The translations under genes were made by a program, and so were the position numbers. From positions 1 to 6,160 of the forward strand of contig RQSC01000210.1 in NCBI GenBank assembly GCA_013416795.1: 6,160 nucleotides of DNA, given 5' to 3'. The stretch's first letter is position 1; every line of letters begins with the position of its first letter. The notes beneath the pieces were generated by a model, which did not search any database, had not been told where the DNA came from, and saw nothing but the letters and a program-made list of their open reading frames with translations. Source of the DNA: Prasinococcaceae sp. CCMP 1430 (lineage: Eukaryota; Plantae; Prasinodermophyta). Below, one piece after another: positions 1 to 6,160 of the stretch.

Positions 1-2
1 AG

Positions 3-419
3 GGGTCCGACAGTCGGTTCAGGGAGGGGGAGAGGTCGGAGTGGCTCGGAGGGAGGTTCGGGAAGGGAGGTGGCAGAAGGGAGAGGAGGGACGAGTGGGT
101 CGACGGTCAAACAGGTTATTGGTAACCGCCGTTCCTCGGTGTCGTTGGTAGGGGCAGGTAGGAAGGGGAGAGGGGGGACGAGGAAGGAGGCGTCGGGAAG
201 GGGTATAGTCAGTTCGCCTCCTGCGTCCACCACGAGCTGGGAGGGGTCAACGAGATCAGGCCCGACCTCTCCCTGAGGTCTGCCTCCAAGGGGGGTCTCG
301 GAGTCGGGGTCGCGTGCAGGGGACCCCGTCGGGGGAACTGGGTCGGCCATGTTCAGTGGGGGAGGGGGTTTGTATCCGGAGGGGAGTGGTTCCAATCGGG
401 GCCGAAGGACGGGGTAGAA
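3..419 (-). other. Proline-rich low-complexity C-terminal extension of integrase, running off the window
   Basis: In-frame translation after VHVDRLAP is dominated by P, L, D and S (e.g. YKPPPPLNMADPVPPTGSP; LPEPPSEPLRPLPLPEP). This accounts for the G/A-rich plus strand here. Confidence 0.8.
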
Positions 420-3400
420 GGGGGCCAGACGGTCGACGTGGACCAGCCACTCTTTCCGGGGTTCGTATCGGGCCTTGGGTCCGCGAAGGTCAGGTCGACA
501 GGGTTTGACCTTATACACCGACTCAAAGTGCTGGTACATGATCTCATACGGTCCATACCAACCCGTCTCGCTGAACCGCGCGGTCCCCGGGAGGTAGATG
601 AGGACGAGGGCCCCTGGCTTGTATGAGGGGTTCCGGAGGGAGGATCGGGTGTTACATCGGTCCGCGATGTCATACTTGACACTGAGGAAGATGCGTGCCG
701 CAGTGGCCCACATGTCGGTCGCCTTGAGGCTCAGCCCTCGGAAGTACTCGTCAAAATCCACAGTCCCATCTGGTAGTCGGGGGGCGGCTCCACCCTCAGT
801 GAGGAAGTCGAACGCCAGCCGAGGTTCTCGGTGGTACAGCAGGTGGAAAGGGGACCACCCCGTAAAGGGATTGATGGACGTGTTCATGGCGAAGGTGGCC
901 ATAGGTAGGTCGGTGTCCCATGTGCGAGCATTTCCCTCTGCCGTCGCTCGCAGGATCTCCTCAATCGTCCGGTTGGCACGTTCCACGAGTCCTTGCGCCT
1001 GGGAACGGTACCCTGAGGTGGTGGCGTAAGAGGTCCCTAGGATCTTGCAGATTTTCTTCATGGCCTGGTTGTTGAAATGGGAGCCCTGGTCCGAGGTGAT
1101 CCGTTCCACACACCCATGCTTAGTCACGATGTGATCCAGGACGGCCTTAATGACTGACGCGGCGTCTGCCTTCTTCGTAGGTACTGCCACCACCCACTTG
1201 GTGAAGTGGTCGATCATGACTAGGATATAGCGATTCCCTCGGGCCGTGTTCCCCTGCCCGATGGGACCAATGAAGTCGATCTGCACCAGCTGAAAGGGAC
1301 GCTCGCTTGTCCAGACATGGGCCGGGGCGTGGTTGAAGGTTTTGGGCTTGGCGAACTGGCAGTTGGGACACTGTTGGATGTATTCCTTCAGGTCTCGACG
1401 CAAGGAGGGCCACCACACCCGGGTTCGCATCCAGTTGTAGACTGTAGCAAAGCCACGATGCCCAGCTAGGGTGGTGCTATGGGCCATGTGCAACACTGTC
1501 GCCCGCAGCGGCTCGGGAAGATAAGTGGCCAAGGAACACCCACCGACGTCCTCCCCGTTCATCCTTAGGAGGTCACCACCTTCGCTTTCTCGCGCGAAGT
1601 GAGTGGACTTAATAGGGAGGACCCGTCGAATGATACCCCCTTTGTCCGCGAACCAAGATCGCTCCGTGTTCAGCTTGGTCCATGCCTTGGTCTCGGCCTC
1701 CGTCGCTGGAGTGGGAAGTGGGGAGGGGTTTCGGAGCTGTTGGCAGTAGGAGTCCTCGTCTTGGGTCTTCCGGATGATGTTCTCAGCCTCCTTCACAAAG
1801 TCCACTTCGAACAGAGTTGCCTCCTCTTCTTCTTCGAGGTCGTCGTCATCAAGGGCGATGTCGACCTCCTGGGACTCCAGGAGCTGGCGTACCCGCATCT
1901 TTTGGGCCTGGGTCGGGACGGAGCCACTCTGCATGTGGTGGAGGTCGGGGTGATCTTCGGTGGGAACTCGAGGGCCAACCCGGCGGGCTTGGAGAGGTCC
2001 ATGTGGGTCGACACTGGCCTTCTTGGTCTGGGCTCTAGTCGTAACAGGGGCCATGGCAAGAGCCCCACACACCGCGAGATGTCGATTCCCGTATTCCGCC
2101 CTCAACTGAGTATCACGTCGAAGCTTCCGTCGAGAGTGGCCAGAGAGGAAATCAGGGGGAGAGGAGGGCAGGATAGGAGGTGTGGGTGGTGCCAGGTTGC
2201 TTCGTTTTCGTGGTCGTAAGCCGGCCACTCCGTGGGGTAAGGTCCGTTTAGCTGGTCTGGTCGACGGGTAGTGGGGCTTCAACCCAGTGACCATGTCTAT
2301 GCGATCCTCAATGTCTTCTCCTGGCGAGTCGGGGTCGGGGTGGCGCGAGAGGGCGTCCGCGTTACCATGGCTCTTCCCGGCTCTCCAGGTGACCACGGGT
2401 TCGAGGTCCTGGACCTTAAGGATGAGTCGTGTGAGGCGGCCCTGGGCTGGGGGGTGGCGGAAGATGGCAGGGAGGGGTTCGTGGTCCGTCACCACTGCGA
2501 AGGGTTGACCTTCGAGGTAGGGACGGTAGTGGTTGATGCTCCAGATGGCCGCGAGGCATTCCTTCTCGGTGACGCTATAGCGCTGCTCGGTGGCCGACAA
2601 CATCCGGCTGGCACAATCGACCACTCGGGGGATCCCATCCACGTCCTGTTCCAGTACCGCGCCAATGGCCCTGCCACAGGCGTCCACACAGAGGCGGAAG
2701 GGTTTGGAGAAGTCGGGGTGGTAGAGGATGAGGTTGTCTCGAAAGGCGTCCTTGATCTTCTGGAACCCCTCCTCCTGAAGGGGACCCCATTTGAACTTGT
2801 TGCCGGCCTTGCAGGGTTCGAGTATGGGGGCCATCCACATGGAGAAGTCCTTGACCACGCGTCTACAATAGGAGGCAAACCCGTGGAAGGTAGCCACCTC
2901 ATCCACCGACGCGGGCGTGGGCCAGTCGAGGATCTTGGATAGCTTCTCCGGCTGAATCCGCACCCCGTCCCGGGTGATCAGGAACCCTAGATACTTGACC
3001 TCGTGTTTGGCGAAGTGGCACTTGTTGGGCTTCACGACGATGCCAGCGTTGTGGAGACGGGCGAGGCACTCCTCCAACTGTCGTACATGCTGCTCGGGGG
3101 TCTTGGAGTAGACGCACACGTCGTCGATGTAGCACACCGCACTGACCCAGGACATTCCTGACATAACAATGTCGATGATGGTCTGGAATCCCGAGGGGGC
3201 GTTACAAAGTCCGAAGGGCATGCTGTTGAACTCAAACAGTCCCAGCCCGGGCATTTTAAAGGCCGTCTTCTCCTTGGAGGTCGCGTCGAGGGGGATTTGC
3301 CAGTACGCCGAGGTAAGATCCATGGTCGTATATAACTTCCCTTGCCCAATAGCCCGTAGGAGGTCGTCGATTCGAGGGAGGGGGTAGCGGTTCTTCTTTG

Positions 3401-6158
3401 TGATGGCGTTGAGGCGGCGGTAGTCAATGCAGAAACGCCAAGACCCGTCCGGCTTCTTCACCAAGAGGACAGGGAAGGCCCAGGGGGACTTGGACTGCTC
3501 GATGACGCCCTGATGCAACATCTTGTGGACCTCTTTCAGAATATCCCCCAACTGGTGGGTCGCGGACCGGTAGGGGGGGACGTTGATGGGGCCCGAGGTT
3601 CCCGTGTCGATGTTGAACTCGAAGGGTACGTTCACGGGGACCGTCCGCTGGTCGAGAGTCCCTACGAAGATATCTGCGTACCTCCTCAGGACGCGTCTCA
3701 TGGCTAGAGCCGACAGCTCGTCCAGGTTCTCCCACCCGACGTCCACCTGGGCTTCGATGACGGCCCACTGCTCCTCGGTCATCCCTGGAGGCAACGGTTG
3801 AGGTCCTTTCGCCATATCCTTCCGCATGTCTTCCTTGGCCGACTCCATTTCCTGAGGTGTGAGTTCAGCCGGGGTCACCCGCGTCTTGGGGTCAGGGAGC
3901 TCAATTATCCCACAGCAGACAGCGGTCGAGTCTTCTGCGACCGGGGTGAGCTGCCCGATCATCTCGCCTTCCAGCAAGACCTCCGTCCAAGGTGTGCCAT
4001 TAACGACGAGGACCTCAACGACGTTCCGGTCGGATTTGTACAGCTGATTGTGAACGTGGTATGACCCCGCATTGGCCAGGTAGGAGTGAGGTTCGAAGAG
4101 CCACCGTTGAGGAGTCTCAACTTCGGGGGAGTGGGCGACGAGGATAGGGACCTTGGTGATGGTGAACGGGTCTAGGGTCACCTTCTGGGCGGCTACAGCG
4201 TCTCGTCCCCTGTCGTAAGGTGCGTCCACCGTGGCGATAGGTTGCATCTCCGGGTGGGAGGCAGACCACACCTTCCCTTCAAACCCGCTGATCCATAGCT
4301 TGGTGCCCACAATGAAGTCCATTCCCAGGATGGGCGAGTGAAAACACTCTGGTAAGACCAGCGCTCGGACGGTGTACTTGATAGGCCCGCATCGAATTGG
4401 GATGAGGGTCACTCCCTTTGGTTGGACGAGGTCCCCATGTACGCCCTGAATAGGGGGTAGGGAGGGGTCCTTGGTGATGGTCAGGCTGTAACTCCGAGCG
4501 AAGCGTTCGGAGATCACCGACACCATAGCTCCCGTATCCAACAGGGCTCGGGCCGAGTGTTGGTTCTTGACCGTGACGGGGAGGAGCAACCGTCGTCGTT
4601 TCTCCGAAGGTATGCCGGCGACGCAGCCGCGGTGGAGGGGGTTGAGATCTGCTCCCTGCTCCTGCATCTCCTGGAGTCGTTGTCGGATCTTCCGCAGCAG
4701 TTCCCGCTGTTTTCTGGACTTCAGCTCAGCCTCCAGGGCGTCCAAGCACTTCCAGATGGTCTCCTCCTCCGAAGGGTTCTGCGGGGCCTGGTCCGTTTTG
4801 AAGAAGGCGACCTGGTCGGGTCCGAAACGAGGCCCTTCCGTTTCGTCTGGGGCGATGTTGGCTTGGCTTCGCTTGATGACGATCCCCACTGGGCAATGAT
4901 CCGAACCATCGACCCACATTCGTACAAAAGCGTCCGTCACCCGTTTCTTGAGGGACCTATCCACGAGGATGTGGTCGATGAGGAAGCCCTCTCCTTTCTC
5001 CCTGTGTCTACCTTGAGCCATCCACGAGCTGTAAACTCCTGGTAGCCCAGGGTATTTGGTGCGGAAGGTGTCGATGAGACCTAACTCTTGACCGTATCTT
5101 GCGAACGCCTTCCTTTCTTCCGCCGTGGTTCCTGGCCATGGACTCCTCGTCATGGGGTCGAGTGCGGTGTACGCATCAATCTCCAATGGGCTCGTATTGA
5201 AGTCCCCACATACTACTAGTGGTCCCTTCTTCTGTTGTTCTTGGAGGAAGGTGAAAAAGGCCTGGTCGAAGGTCTGCCTCCTCGCCTTATGAGTCGGGTG
5301 TCGCTGGTCCAACCACACTGGGACATAGACGTTGTAGATGAGGAGACCCTCGTAGCGAATGCCGATGATGCGGGGGATCTCTGTCAGAGGTCCGCCGGGG
5401 AGGTGGTCCAGGGGTAGCAGCTCCGCTGGTCTCTTTGTGAAGATGGCAACTCCTCCCTGTCCCTTCTCCTGGACGGCGTTCCAGAACTGGTGTATGAGAC
5501 CGTGTCTGGCCATGACCTGGGTCGCCCGCTTGGCTGTCTTTTCAAAGAGTCGAGTCCCCACTTTGACCTCTTGTAGACAGAGGATGTCTGGTTGCTCCTT
5601 GTCTAGGTAGCTGTCGAACTGCCTTTTTCGGAGGTACGCTCGGAGTCCGTTGACGTTGAAGCTGACGATCTTCAAATCTGAGCTCACTCCCGTTGGGCTG
5701 CACTTCTTTGTCGGTAAGTCCTGCTGTAGGGAGGAGTAACTCTGCTTCTTCGCTTGGGCCTCCATAGGGTGTAGGACCGAGACGTGTGAGGGTTGGTTCG
5801 TCATTCGAAAGAAATCGTCGAGCCCTGGTTGTACGTTTACCCCCCAGGTGAAAGCAAAACCACCGCCCTCGGTGGTCCTGGTAGAGTTGCGGATGACCGA
5901 GCGCAAGGCCATATGGCGGTCAAGATGGGCTTGATGTTGAGCGACGCTGACCTCGTCATCAAGATGCCGAGTGAGCTGTCGATCGGCATCTTCGAGTGGG
6001 CGGAGGGGAAAATGGCCTTCGGCGGTGAGGAGAGCGGCGGCACTGGTGGGAGGGAGGGGTTCATCGGGGCGGGAGGGGATGGGCCTGTTCTCTGGTTCCC
6101 ATCGGAGGGCGGCAAGGAGAACAGAAGGGATTCGGAAGGGCACGCGACCCCGAATGGA
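3..6158 (-). CDS. pol: Pol polyprotein, partial at both ends (at least 2052 aa): unassigned N-terminal segment, AP endonuclease, protease, dUTPase-like segment, RT, RNase H, linker, integrase, Pro-rich tail
   Basis: Manual codon-by-codon translation of the minus-strand frame (codon low coordinate divisible by 3) found no stop codon from 6158 to 3. All recognisable domains lie in this one frame. Confidence 0.95.
420..1781 (-). CDS. Integrase: HHCC zinc finger, DD(35)E core and GPY/F C-terminal module
   Basis: H(1479)-X6-H(1458)-X29-C(1368)-X2-C(1359); RPFQLVQIDFIGP (D 1275); ITSDQGSHF (D 1089); QGLVERANRTI (E 981, 35 residues between D and E); WDTDLP; YKPGALVLIY...WYGPYEI; VHVDRL. The N-terminal boundary is approximate. 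Confidence 0.96.
1818..1850 (-). repeat. Low-complexity acidic tract (DDDDLEEEEEA) in the RNase H-integrase linker
   Basis: Plus-strand (ctc/ttc)n and gtc/atc triplets at 1821-1850 encode E5 and D4 in the Pol frame. Confidence 0.85.
2343..2702 (-). CDS. Ty3/Gypsy-type RNase H domain
   Basis: PFRLCVDACGRAIGAVLEQ (D 2682), YSVTEKECLA (E 2559), YRPYLEG, VVTDH (D 2484), HGNADALSR (D 2355). Confidence 0.95.
2703..3620 (-). CDS. Reverse transcriptase domain (LTR-retrotransposon type, including thumb)
   Basis: FNIDTG...PPYR, SPWAFPVLLVKKPDGSWRFCIDYRRLN, YPLPRIDDLL, TMDLTSAYWQI, KTAF, MPFGLCNAP, YIDD (3120-3131), KCHF, YLG, WPTP, FKWG. Confidence 0.97.
3939..4199 (-). CDS. Possible degenerate dUTPase-like segment between protease and RT
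   Basis: VTLDPFTITKVP...VVEVLVVNGTPWTEVLLEGEMIGQL follows the pattern of trimeric dUTPase structural segments (IpPge..lvpT; v.l.N......i..GdRIAQL). The catalytic RSG and IDxDY motifs are absent. This is a by-eye resemblance only. Confidence 0.4.
4308..4589 (-). CDS. Retropepsin-type aspartic protease domain of Pol
   Basis: ARALLDTGAMVSVISERFA with the catalytic DTG (D at 4536-4538), flap-like IQGVHG, and C-terminal PILGMDF motif. Confidence 0.93.
4875..5675 (-). CDS. Exonuclease III/APE1-family AP endonuclease domain (EEP fold), in frame within Pol
   Basis: Motifs in order: LKIVSFNVNGLRA (N at 5655), [10 protein letters not shown] (E at 5568), GGVAIFTK, IYNVYVP (Y at 5325), PLVVCGDFN (D 5202, N 5196), GTTAEERKAF, GLIDTFRTKYP, GFLIDHILV (D 4974), GSDHCPV (D 4899, H 4896). 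Confidence 0.96.
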
Positions 6159-6160
6159 GT

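Follow-up and report, generated by a model that had tools for sequence, protein, structure and literature searches.

Retroviruses and retrotransposons with long terminal repeats (LTRs) are thought to depend on the base-excision repair of their host when their complementary DNA (cDNA) is damaged, and on integrase alone for insertion. In betaretroviruses, a dUTPase sits ahead of the protease. An accessory cellular enzyme within the Pol protein of an LTR element is also known from Gypsy-DNMT3 of charophytes (PMC5890265), while the non-LTR elements Dualen/RandI combine an APE-type nuclease with a second integration enzyme (PMC5029228). Here we describe a stretch of 6,160 nucleotides from the alga Prasinococcaceae sp. 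CCMP 1430 (contig RQSC01000210.1, positions 1 to 6,160), which was analysed as a whole and is called the window in the following. The window encodes a polyprotein of the Ty3/gypsy type that harbors an extra domain ahead of the protease. This domain is an intact nuclease of the ExoIII/APE1 family, belonging to the ExoA/APE1 branch, which is built into the Pol polyprotein. We are highly confident that it is a cellular DNA-repair enzyme by descent and not an endonuclease of a long interspersed nuclear element (LINE). With good, somewhat lower confidence we hold this identity jointly with the verdict, set out below, that its donor cannot be recovered.

The nature of the domain was deduced from several comparisons. 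In HMMER searches, residues 144-428 of the translated frame matched B. subtilis ExoA (5cfe) with an E-value of 3.9e-42 and human APE1 (PDB chain 6w4i_A) with an E-value of 1.3e-41 and 145.9 bits, positions 2-283 of the query being aligned. Arabidopsis ARP (1.2e-33) and E. coli ExoIII (3.8e-18) followed. The NCBIfam equivalog model TIGR00633 'xth' gave 181.7 bits at a cut-off of 99.05 and was covered from position 1 to 253 out of 255, and the Pfam family Exo_endo_phos spanned residues 165-421. An AlphaFold2 model of the nuclease built with 63 aligned sequences reached a mean predicted local distance difference test (pLDDT) score of 88.5 and a predicted template modelling (TM) score of 0.90. Top Foldseek matches of this model were human APE1 (E 5e-27, TM 0.81-0.90) and ExoA (TM 0.87), and it displayed the four-layer alpha/beta sandwich of the ExoIII/APE1 family. 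All eight catalytic and metal-binding residues are kept, namely the equivalents of N68, E96, Y171, D210, N212, D283, D308 and H309 of human APE1. An initial annotation of the window had pointed to a similarity with human APE1, and this similarity is real: every segment quoted from the window is present in the translation and every quoted human segment in the HMMER alignment to 6w4i_A. It had also called the segment G.T.xER..F typical of Xth/APE1 enzymes, which agrees with the family alignment of 63 sequences, where G, T, E and R of G.T..ER are nearly invariant.

According to the same annotation, the domain does not look like a LINE endonuclease. Derivation from such an enzyme through recombination between elements might be considered, as both groups belong to one superfamily (Pfam Exo_endo_phos) and the L1 endonuclease was detectable with residues 144-428, yet only at an E-value of 3.3e-5 and 26 bits. 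Compared with the 146 bits obtained for APE1/ExoA, the difference amounts to 36 orders of magnitude in E-value. Moreover, the score lies above the threshold curated for the xth equivalog, which LINE endonucleases do not reach to our knowledge, and the motifs G.T..ER and GSDHCP, nearly invariant in cellular enzymes, are retained. The reverse transcriptase (RT) next to the nuclease, a match of RVT_1, is not of the non-LTR type and is accompanied by a Ty3-type RNase H and an integrase. By bit scores, xth cut-off and family motifs a LINE origin is thus effectively refuted, and we regard it as practically excluded.

The element itself was recognized by its reading frame and by the order of its domains. 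A minus-strand frame is open for 2052 codons and is cut at both window ends, while the longest open stretch in any other frame of the window comprises at most 162 codons. Pfam matches and motifs revealed the succession of protease, RT, RNase H and integrase that is characteristic of Ty3/gypsy elements (Metaviridae). In the integrase, an H2C2 finger (H..H..C..C) as well as the D, D and E residues are legible in the translation. Neither a chromodomain nor any other Pfam family was detected in the tail following the integrase. The features are compiled in Table 1.

Table 1. Features encoded by the window (residues are numbered along the translated open frame)
Feature	Position in the window	Strand	Evidence
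Ty3/gypsy-type polyprotein, single open frame	3..6158	-	Frame scan and Pfam domain order
Residues 1-143, perhaps Gag side	5730..6158	-	No Pfam match at E <= 0.1
S/P/T/K-rich stretch preceding the first strand, residues 144-161	5676..5729	-	Resembles only human APE1 ~45-61; pLDDT 59-70
Complete nuclease fold of the ExoIII/APE1 family, residues 162-428	4875..5675	-	HMMER, NCBIfam, AlphaFold2 model, Foldseek
Linker between nuclease and protease, residues 429-520	4599..4874	-	No Pfam match
Aspartic protease, residues 527-615, DTGA motif	4314..4580	-	Pfam Asp_protease_2, 3.4e-12
Reverse transcriptase, residues 900-1059, YIDD motif	2982..3461	-	Pfam RVT_1, 2.7e-36
RNase H, Ty3/gypsy and retrovirus type, residues 1124-1250	2409..2789	-	Pfam RT_RNaseH_2 and RT_RNaseH
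Integrase, residues 1548-1717	1008..1517	-	Pfam Integrase_H2C2 (1548-1605, 1.5e-17) and rve (1619-1717, 8.8e-15)
Proline-rich C-terminal tail, residues 1718-2052, frame open at window end	3..1007	-	No Pfam match

To find relatives, a library of 5.8 billion protein clusters was searched and one of 1.84 billion representatives was scanned exhaustively with HMMER. Among the approximately 15 billion proteins covered, none was more than 43% identical to the nuclease, which excludes a recent capture from any of the genes sampled. The best matches in the 5.8 billion clusters were exodeoxyribonuclease III proteins of 250 amino acids with identities of 36-41% in BLASTP and of up to 43% over aligned columns; named members of these clusters belonged to Verrucomicrobiae, Planctomycetota, Opitutae and Eubacteriaceae. 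Within the 1.84 billion representatives the top identity was 39%, and short proteins of the bacterial type were mixed with longer ones bearing the domain at the C-terminus. The named longer proteins were APE1s of animals (Mnemiopsis, Ladona, Brassicogethes, a Sarcophaga cluster and Rodentolepis), of red algae (Galdieria, Hildenbrandia) and of protists (Carpediemonas and a heterolobosean). Identities to animal, plant, red-algal and protist APE1s ranged from 30 to 37%. Metagenome contigs of the Joint Genome Institute and IMG/VR contained no close relatives of the nuclease or of the RT-RNase H region. The GC content at third codon positions (GC3) is 0.67 in the nuclease and 0.64-0.79 in the other parts of the element, indicating that the nuclease is not a compositionally foreign, recent arrival. 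Given the identity of at most 43%, a very long branch (see below) and the element-like GC3, the capture must be judged old.

The only long protein with a similar nuclease that was found with the window as query is P0121, a protein of 2097 amino acids; with P0121 as query, P0281 and P0282 were additionally obtained. The lineage of the window thus has no sequenced relative of its own that could break its long branch. P0121, P0281 and P0282 all originate from marine metagenome assemblies (ENA ERZ1764465; one SOLA coastal sample). In the loci L001 and L002 this family shows the order N-terminal region, APE1-type nuclease, protease, RT, RNase H and integrase. Its nuclease is of the APE1/Xth type as well, with Arabidopsis ARP as best match (3e-22). 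Between P0121 and P0282, nonsynonymous divergence (dN) amounts to 0.22 in the nuclease, where synonymous sites are saturated; the corresponding figures are 0.86 for the N-terminal region and 0.07 for the RT. These values indicate that the nuclease of the P0121 family is under purifying selection. Although the family has its layout in common with the window, as well as the kept catalytic residues and the loss of Y128, N174 and one aromatic residue of the pocket, the two nucleases are only 22-25% identical, and the regions from RT to integrase about 28%. A pair of LTRs was not detected within the length of the contigs L001 and L002, which merely disclosed short tandem repeats with periods of 64, 72 and 45 bases (L001, 1-251 and 2357-2585; L002, 2000-2269). 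The repeats separate upstream gag-like open reading frames from Pol, lying just ahead of the Pol start and extending across it, and the repetitive N-terminus of P0121 is encoded by those of L001.

While the catalytic centre is complete, the surrounding pocket is altered. Among 89 cellular sequences, 48 columns show a conservation of 85% or more, and the window keeps 34 of them. Relative to human APE1 it exhibits the changes Y128Q, N174V, F266S, W280F, R281L, Y284H and W67F, so that the abasic-site pocket and DNA-contact set of the Xth family (Y128, N174, F266, W280, R281) reads Q, V, S, F, L. Y128 is present in 80 of the 89 cellular rows and N174 in 82; in the P0121 family these positions are occupied by L and S, respectively. 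Position 266 is aromatic in 87 rows and remains F or Y in the P0121 family, while W280 (82 rows) is replaced there by G. R281 (88 rows) and Y284 (87 rows) are both kept by the P0121 family. Common to both retroelement lineages are the retention of all catalytic residues and the replacement of N174, Y128 and an aromatic residue in the abasic pocket. The residues at which the window departs are those that grip the DNA and the sugar of the abasic site.

The consequences of such changes can be estimated from studies on human APE1, in which the pocket formed by F266 and W280 restricts the active site (PMC5785985). The substitution F266A raised the burst rate of the 3'-5' exonuclease about 20-fold and its steady-state rate about 50-fold, and ExoIII, which possesses a single aromatic residue, is a strong exonuclease (PMC5785985). 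In view of this effect, the exchanges of F266 for Ser, W280 for Phe, N174 for Val and Y128 for Gln lead one to expect a more ExoIII-like, end-processing enzyme. Thus, we predict a working nuclease with a wider pocket, which would process ends rather than act as a strict abasic-site cutter.

Attempts were also made to assess whether the stretch and its unusual domain are real. Contigs from four public runs of three studies could be aligned to the region of the nuclease, differing from the window at 1-7 positions per 285-671 bases, and their fragmented pattern is that of a repeated element. Another contig, found in the runs X1 and X2, matches the window above position 5420 and diverges across approximately 5390-5420 with the frame being kept; it contains AEQLPPEHIPKG at the site where the window has AELLPLDHLPGG. 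Hence, at least one more diverged copy or subfamily bearing the nuclease exists. In the integrase and RT regions (window positions 1044-1394 and 2829-3562), some contigs were only about 85-87% identical, e.g., with 47 differences in 351 bases, which means that the organism holds related subfamilies of the element. An assembly chimera, or a dead relic in which the nuclease is a decaying passenger without function, might be suspected as only a single full copy was read and several near-invariant residues are replaced. However, the frame of 2052 codons is uninterrupted, independent contigs from the three studies span the domain and its junctions, the catalytic residues are all kept despite the very long branch, and the sister family is under purifying selection. 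We therefore consider an artefact or relic very improbable.

Contigs of the run X4 carried an extra GATC exactly at the GATC sites of the window at 536-545, 643-646, 1952-1955, 2976-2979 and 4512-4515, giving GATCGATC, and an extra TCGA at 3366. These insertions have the appearance of restriction sites that were filled in and religated in a Hi-C-type library, i.e., an artefact and not a variation of the element.

As to its role, the nuclease would be translated as part of Pol, carried into the virus-like particle and released by the protease. Depending on Mg, it would then act on the element's own DNA copy, where it might cut abasic sites and chiefly trim damaged or mismatched 3' ends, serving as a repair accessory comparable to the retroviral dUTPase. 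By this analogy, a particle-borne function in cDNA repair or in the cleaning of 3' ends is possible, though we would put it somewhat short of probable. As the principal alternative for its function, the enzyme could nick the chromosomal target and thereby open a second way of entry that is independent of integrase or assists it, namely target-primed insertion as in LINEs or Dualen. Both retroelement lineages have lost residues for the recognition of abasic sites while keeping the catalytic centre, a direction also taken by LINE endonucleases, and a precedent for two endonucleases in one element is given by Dualen (PMC5029228). On the other hand, an integrase with both its H2C2 and its DDE motifs is present in full, leaving no apparent need for such a pathway, the domain scores as a true xth equivalog, unlike LINE endonucleases, and no insertion sites were seen. 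Target nicking is thus unlikely in our opinion. A more far-reaching scenario, which we regard as doubtful, would be an old, hitherto undescribed lineage of integrase-bearing LTR elements in marine algae and protists. Its ancestor would have acquired a repair nuclease once, the pocket of which was retuned from the cutting of abasic sites to end processing or nicking, and the elements would now require it at some point of their replication or insertion for which no known retroelement brings an enzyme of its own.

Several points weigh against a working nuclease with the particle-borne role favoured here. Both gag and LTRs fall beyond the window, which is taken up entirely by the open frame, and the full element is consequently not seen. 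No RNA runs containing the stretch were found. N174, R281, Y284 and Y128 are replaced though they are nearly invariant in working enzymes, and the activity of the nuclease could accordingly be weak or of another kind. The function on the cDNA is an analogy and not a result. Finally, departures from conserved columns coincide in the window and the P0121 family at seven positions versus 3.8 expected (p 0.03), suggesting that the shared losses of the two lineages are only mildly above chance.

It was of particular interest from which organism the nuclease had been obtained. The initial annotation had proposed a captured eukaryotic host APE1 and had stated that the similarity extends about 15 residues upstream of the catalytic fold. 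Against a human APE1 peptide of 17 residues, taken from the HMMER alignment to 6w4i_A, the upstream residues indeed scored 34, a value equalled by only 0.2% of composition-preserving shuffles. This did not hold for other sequences: the best score against 85 other eukaryotic N-terminal extensions was 23, which corresponds to the shuffle level (mean 24), and a profile of 24 animal-type extensions yielded -10.4 bits, which 19% of the shuffles equalled. As a eukaryotic marker, the extension therefore fails outside the human sequence. The plant ARP signature AYNP.TMRPPP is absent ahead of the first strand in the window. The upstream likeness, residing within an S/P/T/K-rich linker, appears to be human-specific and no feature of the family, and constitutes weak evidence at most.

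Trees were calculated from the catalytic fold only, without the N-terminal extension; they combined the retroelement nucleases with 57-156 cellular sequences and comprised neither LINE endonucleases nor APE2 nor the APE1/ARP of the host. The end branch of the window nuclease measured 1.7-2.2 changes per site, and the three methods applied disagreed on its position. FastTree placed the window beside one short sequence of the bacterial type (support 63), while in a quick mixture-model tree it adjoined P0201 and the P0121 clade. A careful mixture-model tree put it within a clade of 14 rows consisting of short ExoA-type sequences, of which the named ones are bacterial (support 98/95), and 994 of 1000 ultrafast bootstrap trees gave it a purely bacterial neighbouring group. 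Trees in which the position was constrained told another story. When the window was forced together with the animal-type APE1 clade or with the P0121 family, the log-likelihood rose by 1.84 and 2.10 units, respectively, above that of the free tree (p-AU in the approximately unbiased (AU) test 0.54 and 0.57), and a union with the plant ARP clade was 5.27 units below it (p-AU 0.41). As constrained trees were equal or higher in likelihood, the free search and its bootstraps must have been stuck in a local optimum. In the phylogeny that had been suggested as a check, the position of the window thus differed with the method, and neither a union with animal-type nor one with plant enzymes was rejected.

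In a placement scan, the window was attached to each of the 118 branches of a backbone and all trees were scored under one posterior mean site frequency (PMSF) model. The result was flat, the top 20 placements lying within 3.2 log-likelihood units. A share of 31% of the likelihood weight fell to the bacterial clade, about 60% to the long-branched region of P0121, P0201, P0217 and P0225, and 1-3% to the animal-type clade. The AU test left 65 of the 118 placements unrejected, among them 19 bacterial, 21 animal-type and 14 other eukaryotic ones, one on the plant stem and one on the retroelement stem, the rest being deeper and mixed. With group profiles, the bacterial ExoA-type scored 199 bits and the eukaryotic groups 171-186 bits, values to which little weight was given because the bacterial set had been picked as best hits.

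P0201 (L003, 191-1318, a Tara Oceans contig) is a stand-alone APE1-like gene of 375 amino acids. It possesses the rare change of W67 to F (SFNING) that is common to both retroelement nucleases, and two trees united it with the P0121 clade (support 88/52). P0201 may represent cellular kin of the donor; alternatively, a long-branch effect may underlie its grouping.

Two origins have to be weighed on these data. The first is descent from a bacterial ExoA-type exonuclease III, closest to that of the Planctomycetes-Verrucomicrobia-Chlamydiae (PVC) group and Firmicutes, which would have been transferred horizontally to an ancestral element. Its support comes from the matches with 250 amino acids (38-43% identity) in the bacterial groups named above, from the 14-row clade with which 99% of the bootstrap trees concur, and from the share of the placement weight in the bacterial clade. 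Yet trees constrained outside this clade were equal or better in likelihood, 46 of the 65 unrejected placements lie outside it, the comparison set was enriched in best hits, and long-branch effects are likely. A bacterial origin deduced from the ultrafast bootstrap alone (98/95; 994/1000) was not accepted in view of the constrained trees and the flat placement scan. We consider a bacterial donor conceivable but somewhat less than probable.

The second origin is capture of a eukaryotic APE1 gene, ultimately a base-excision-repair gene of the host, via spliced mRNA. Human APE1 ranks with the top individual matches, the 17 upstream residues resemble its extension, and union with the animal-type clade improved the likelihood as mentioned. 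In addition, the helix following the CLQE.K motif comprises 23 residues, compared to 17-18 in plants and protists and 14 in bacteria, and it is generally known that retroelements can co-package and copy cellular mRNA. Conversely, the top identities (41-43%) and the top profile score, the latter from a set biased towards best hits, belong to the bacterial ExoA-type, the bootstrap trees almost uniformly gave a bacterial neighbour, and the upstream likeness broke down outside the human sequence. The gene of a green alga itself should bear the plant ARP signature, which is missing here, and the maximum identity of 43% speaks against a recent capture from the host. The lack of introns, from which passage through mRNA had been deduced, carries no weight, because every round of retrotransposition takes the cargo through RNA, and the gene of a bacterial donor would be intronless anyway. 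All in all, a eukaryotic donor seems rather unlikely to us, and no powered test either supported or refuted the captured host APE1 of the initial annotation, with bacterial proteins giving the top identities, the majority of placements still standing and the tree methods in conflict. We concluded that the donor lineage, whether bacterial ExoA-like or eukaryotic APE1, is not recoverable from the sequence.

The window and the P0121 family may go back to one capture of the nuclease or to two. A common origin would be favoured by the same slot before the protease, by the changes of W67 and W188 to F in both nucleases, by the helix after the E96 motif, which has 22-23 residues in both and 14-18 elsewhere, by the 'WP' preceding the G.T..ER segment, by the constrained tree, which was slightly better, and by the seven coinciding departures from conserved columns mentioned above (3.8 expected, p 0.03). 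The count of rare residues opposes it: window and P0121 family have 3-5 of them in common, which is not above the number reached by some cellular sequences (up to 6). Sharing of rare residues was therefore rejected as evidence for one capture.

The presence of an own ExoIII/APE1-type nuclease in two very distant marine lineages suggests that the repair or end-cleaning of cDNA can be a limiting step for such elements. The element would also be a natural experiment in the retuning of APE1 specificity, since the pocket residue whose replacement boosts the exonuclease (F266) is exchanged. Furthermore, the case illustrates the limits of donor assignment for old captured domains, as the decision between a eukaryotic and a bacterial source cannot be made at present sampling.

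Compared with the described systems, the nuclease is closest to human APE1/APEX1 and B. subtilis ExoA, with which it shares the fold, the length, the eight catalytic and metal-binding residues and the motifs G.T..ER and GSDHCP. It differs from both by its position within a retrotransposon polyprotein, by an identity of only 37-43% and by the longer helix after the E96 motif, and from human APE1 by the lack of a redox or nuclear-targeting N-terminal domain. The L1 endonuclease, an APE-type enzyme of LINEs, belongs to the same superfamily and likewise resides upstream of the RT in a retroelement, but the RT accompanying the window nuclease is of the LTR type and is combined with a protease, a Ty3-type RNase H and an integrase. 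In Dualen the backbone is that of a LINE, and its two endonucleases are a LINE-type APE and a restriction-like enzyme, whereas the window represents an LTR-type element with an integrase and a repair-type nuclease. In the open-access literature, no ExoIII/APE1-type nuclease was found to be published for an integrase-bearing LTR element. The window nuclease occupies a slot just before the protease that matches that of the betaretroviral dUTPase. Like this dUTPase and the DNMT3 of the charophyte Gypsy elements, it is a cellular nucleic-acid enzyme inserted in frame into Pol, but here the enzyme is an ExoIII/APE1 nuclease. Thus, accessory enzymes in Pol and APE nucleases in LINEs are already known, and the new part would be the occurrence of an ExoIII/APE1-type nuclease in an LTR element that possesses an integrase.

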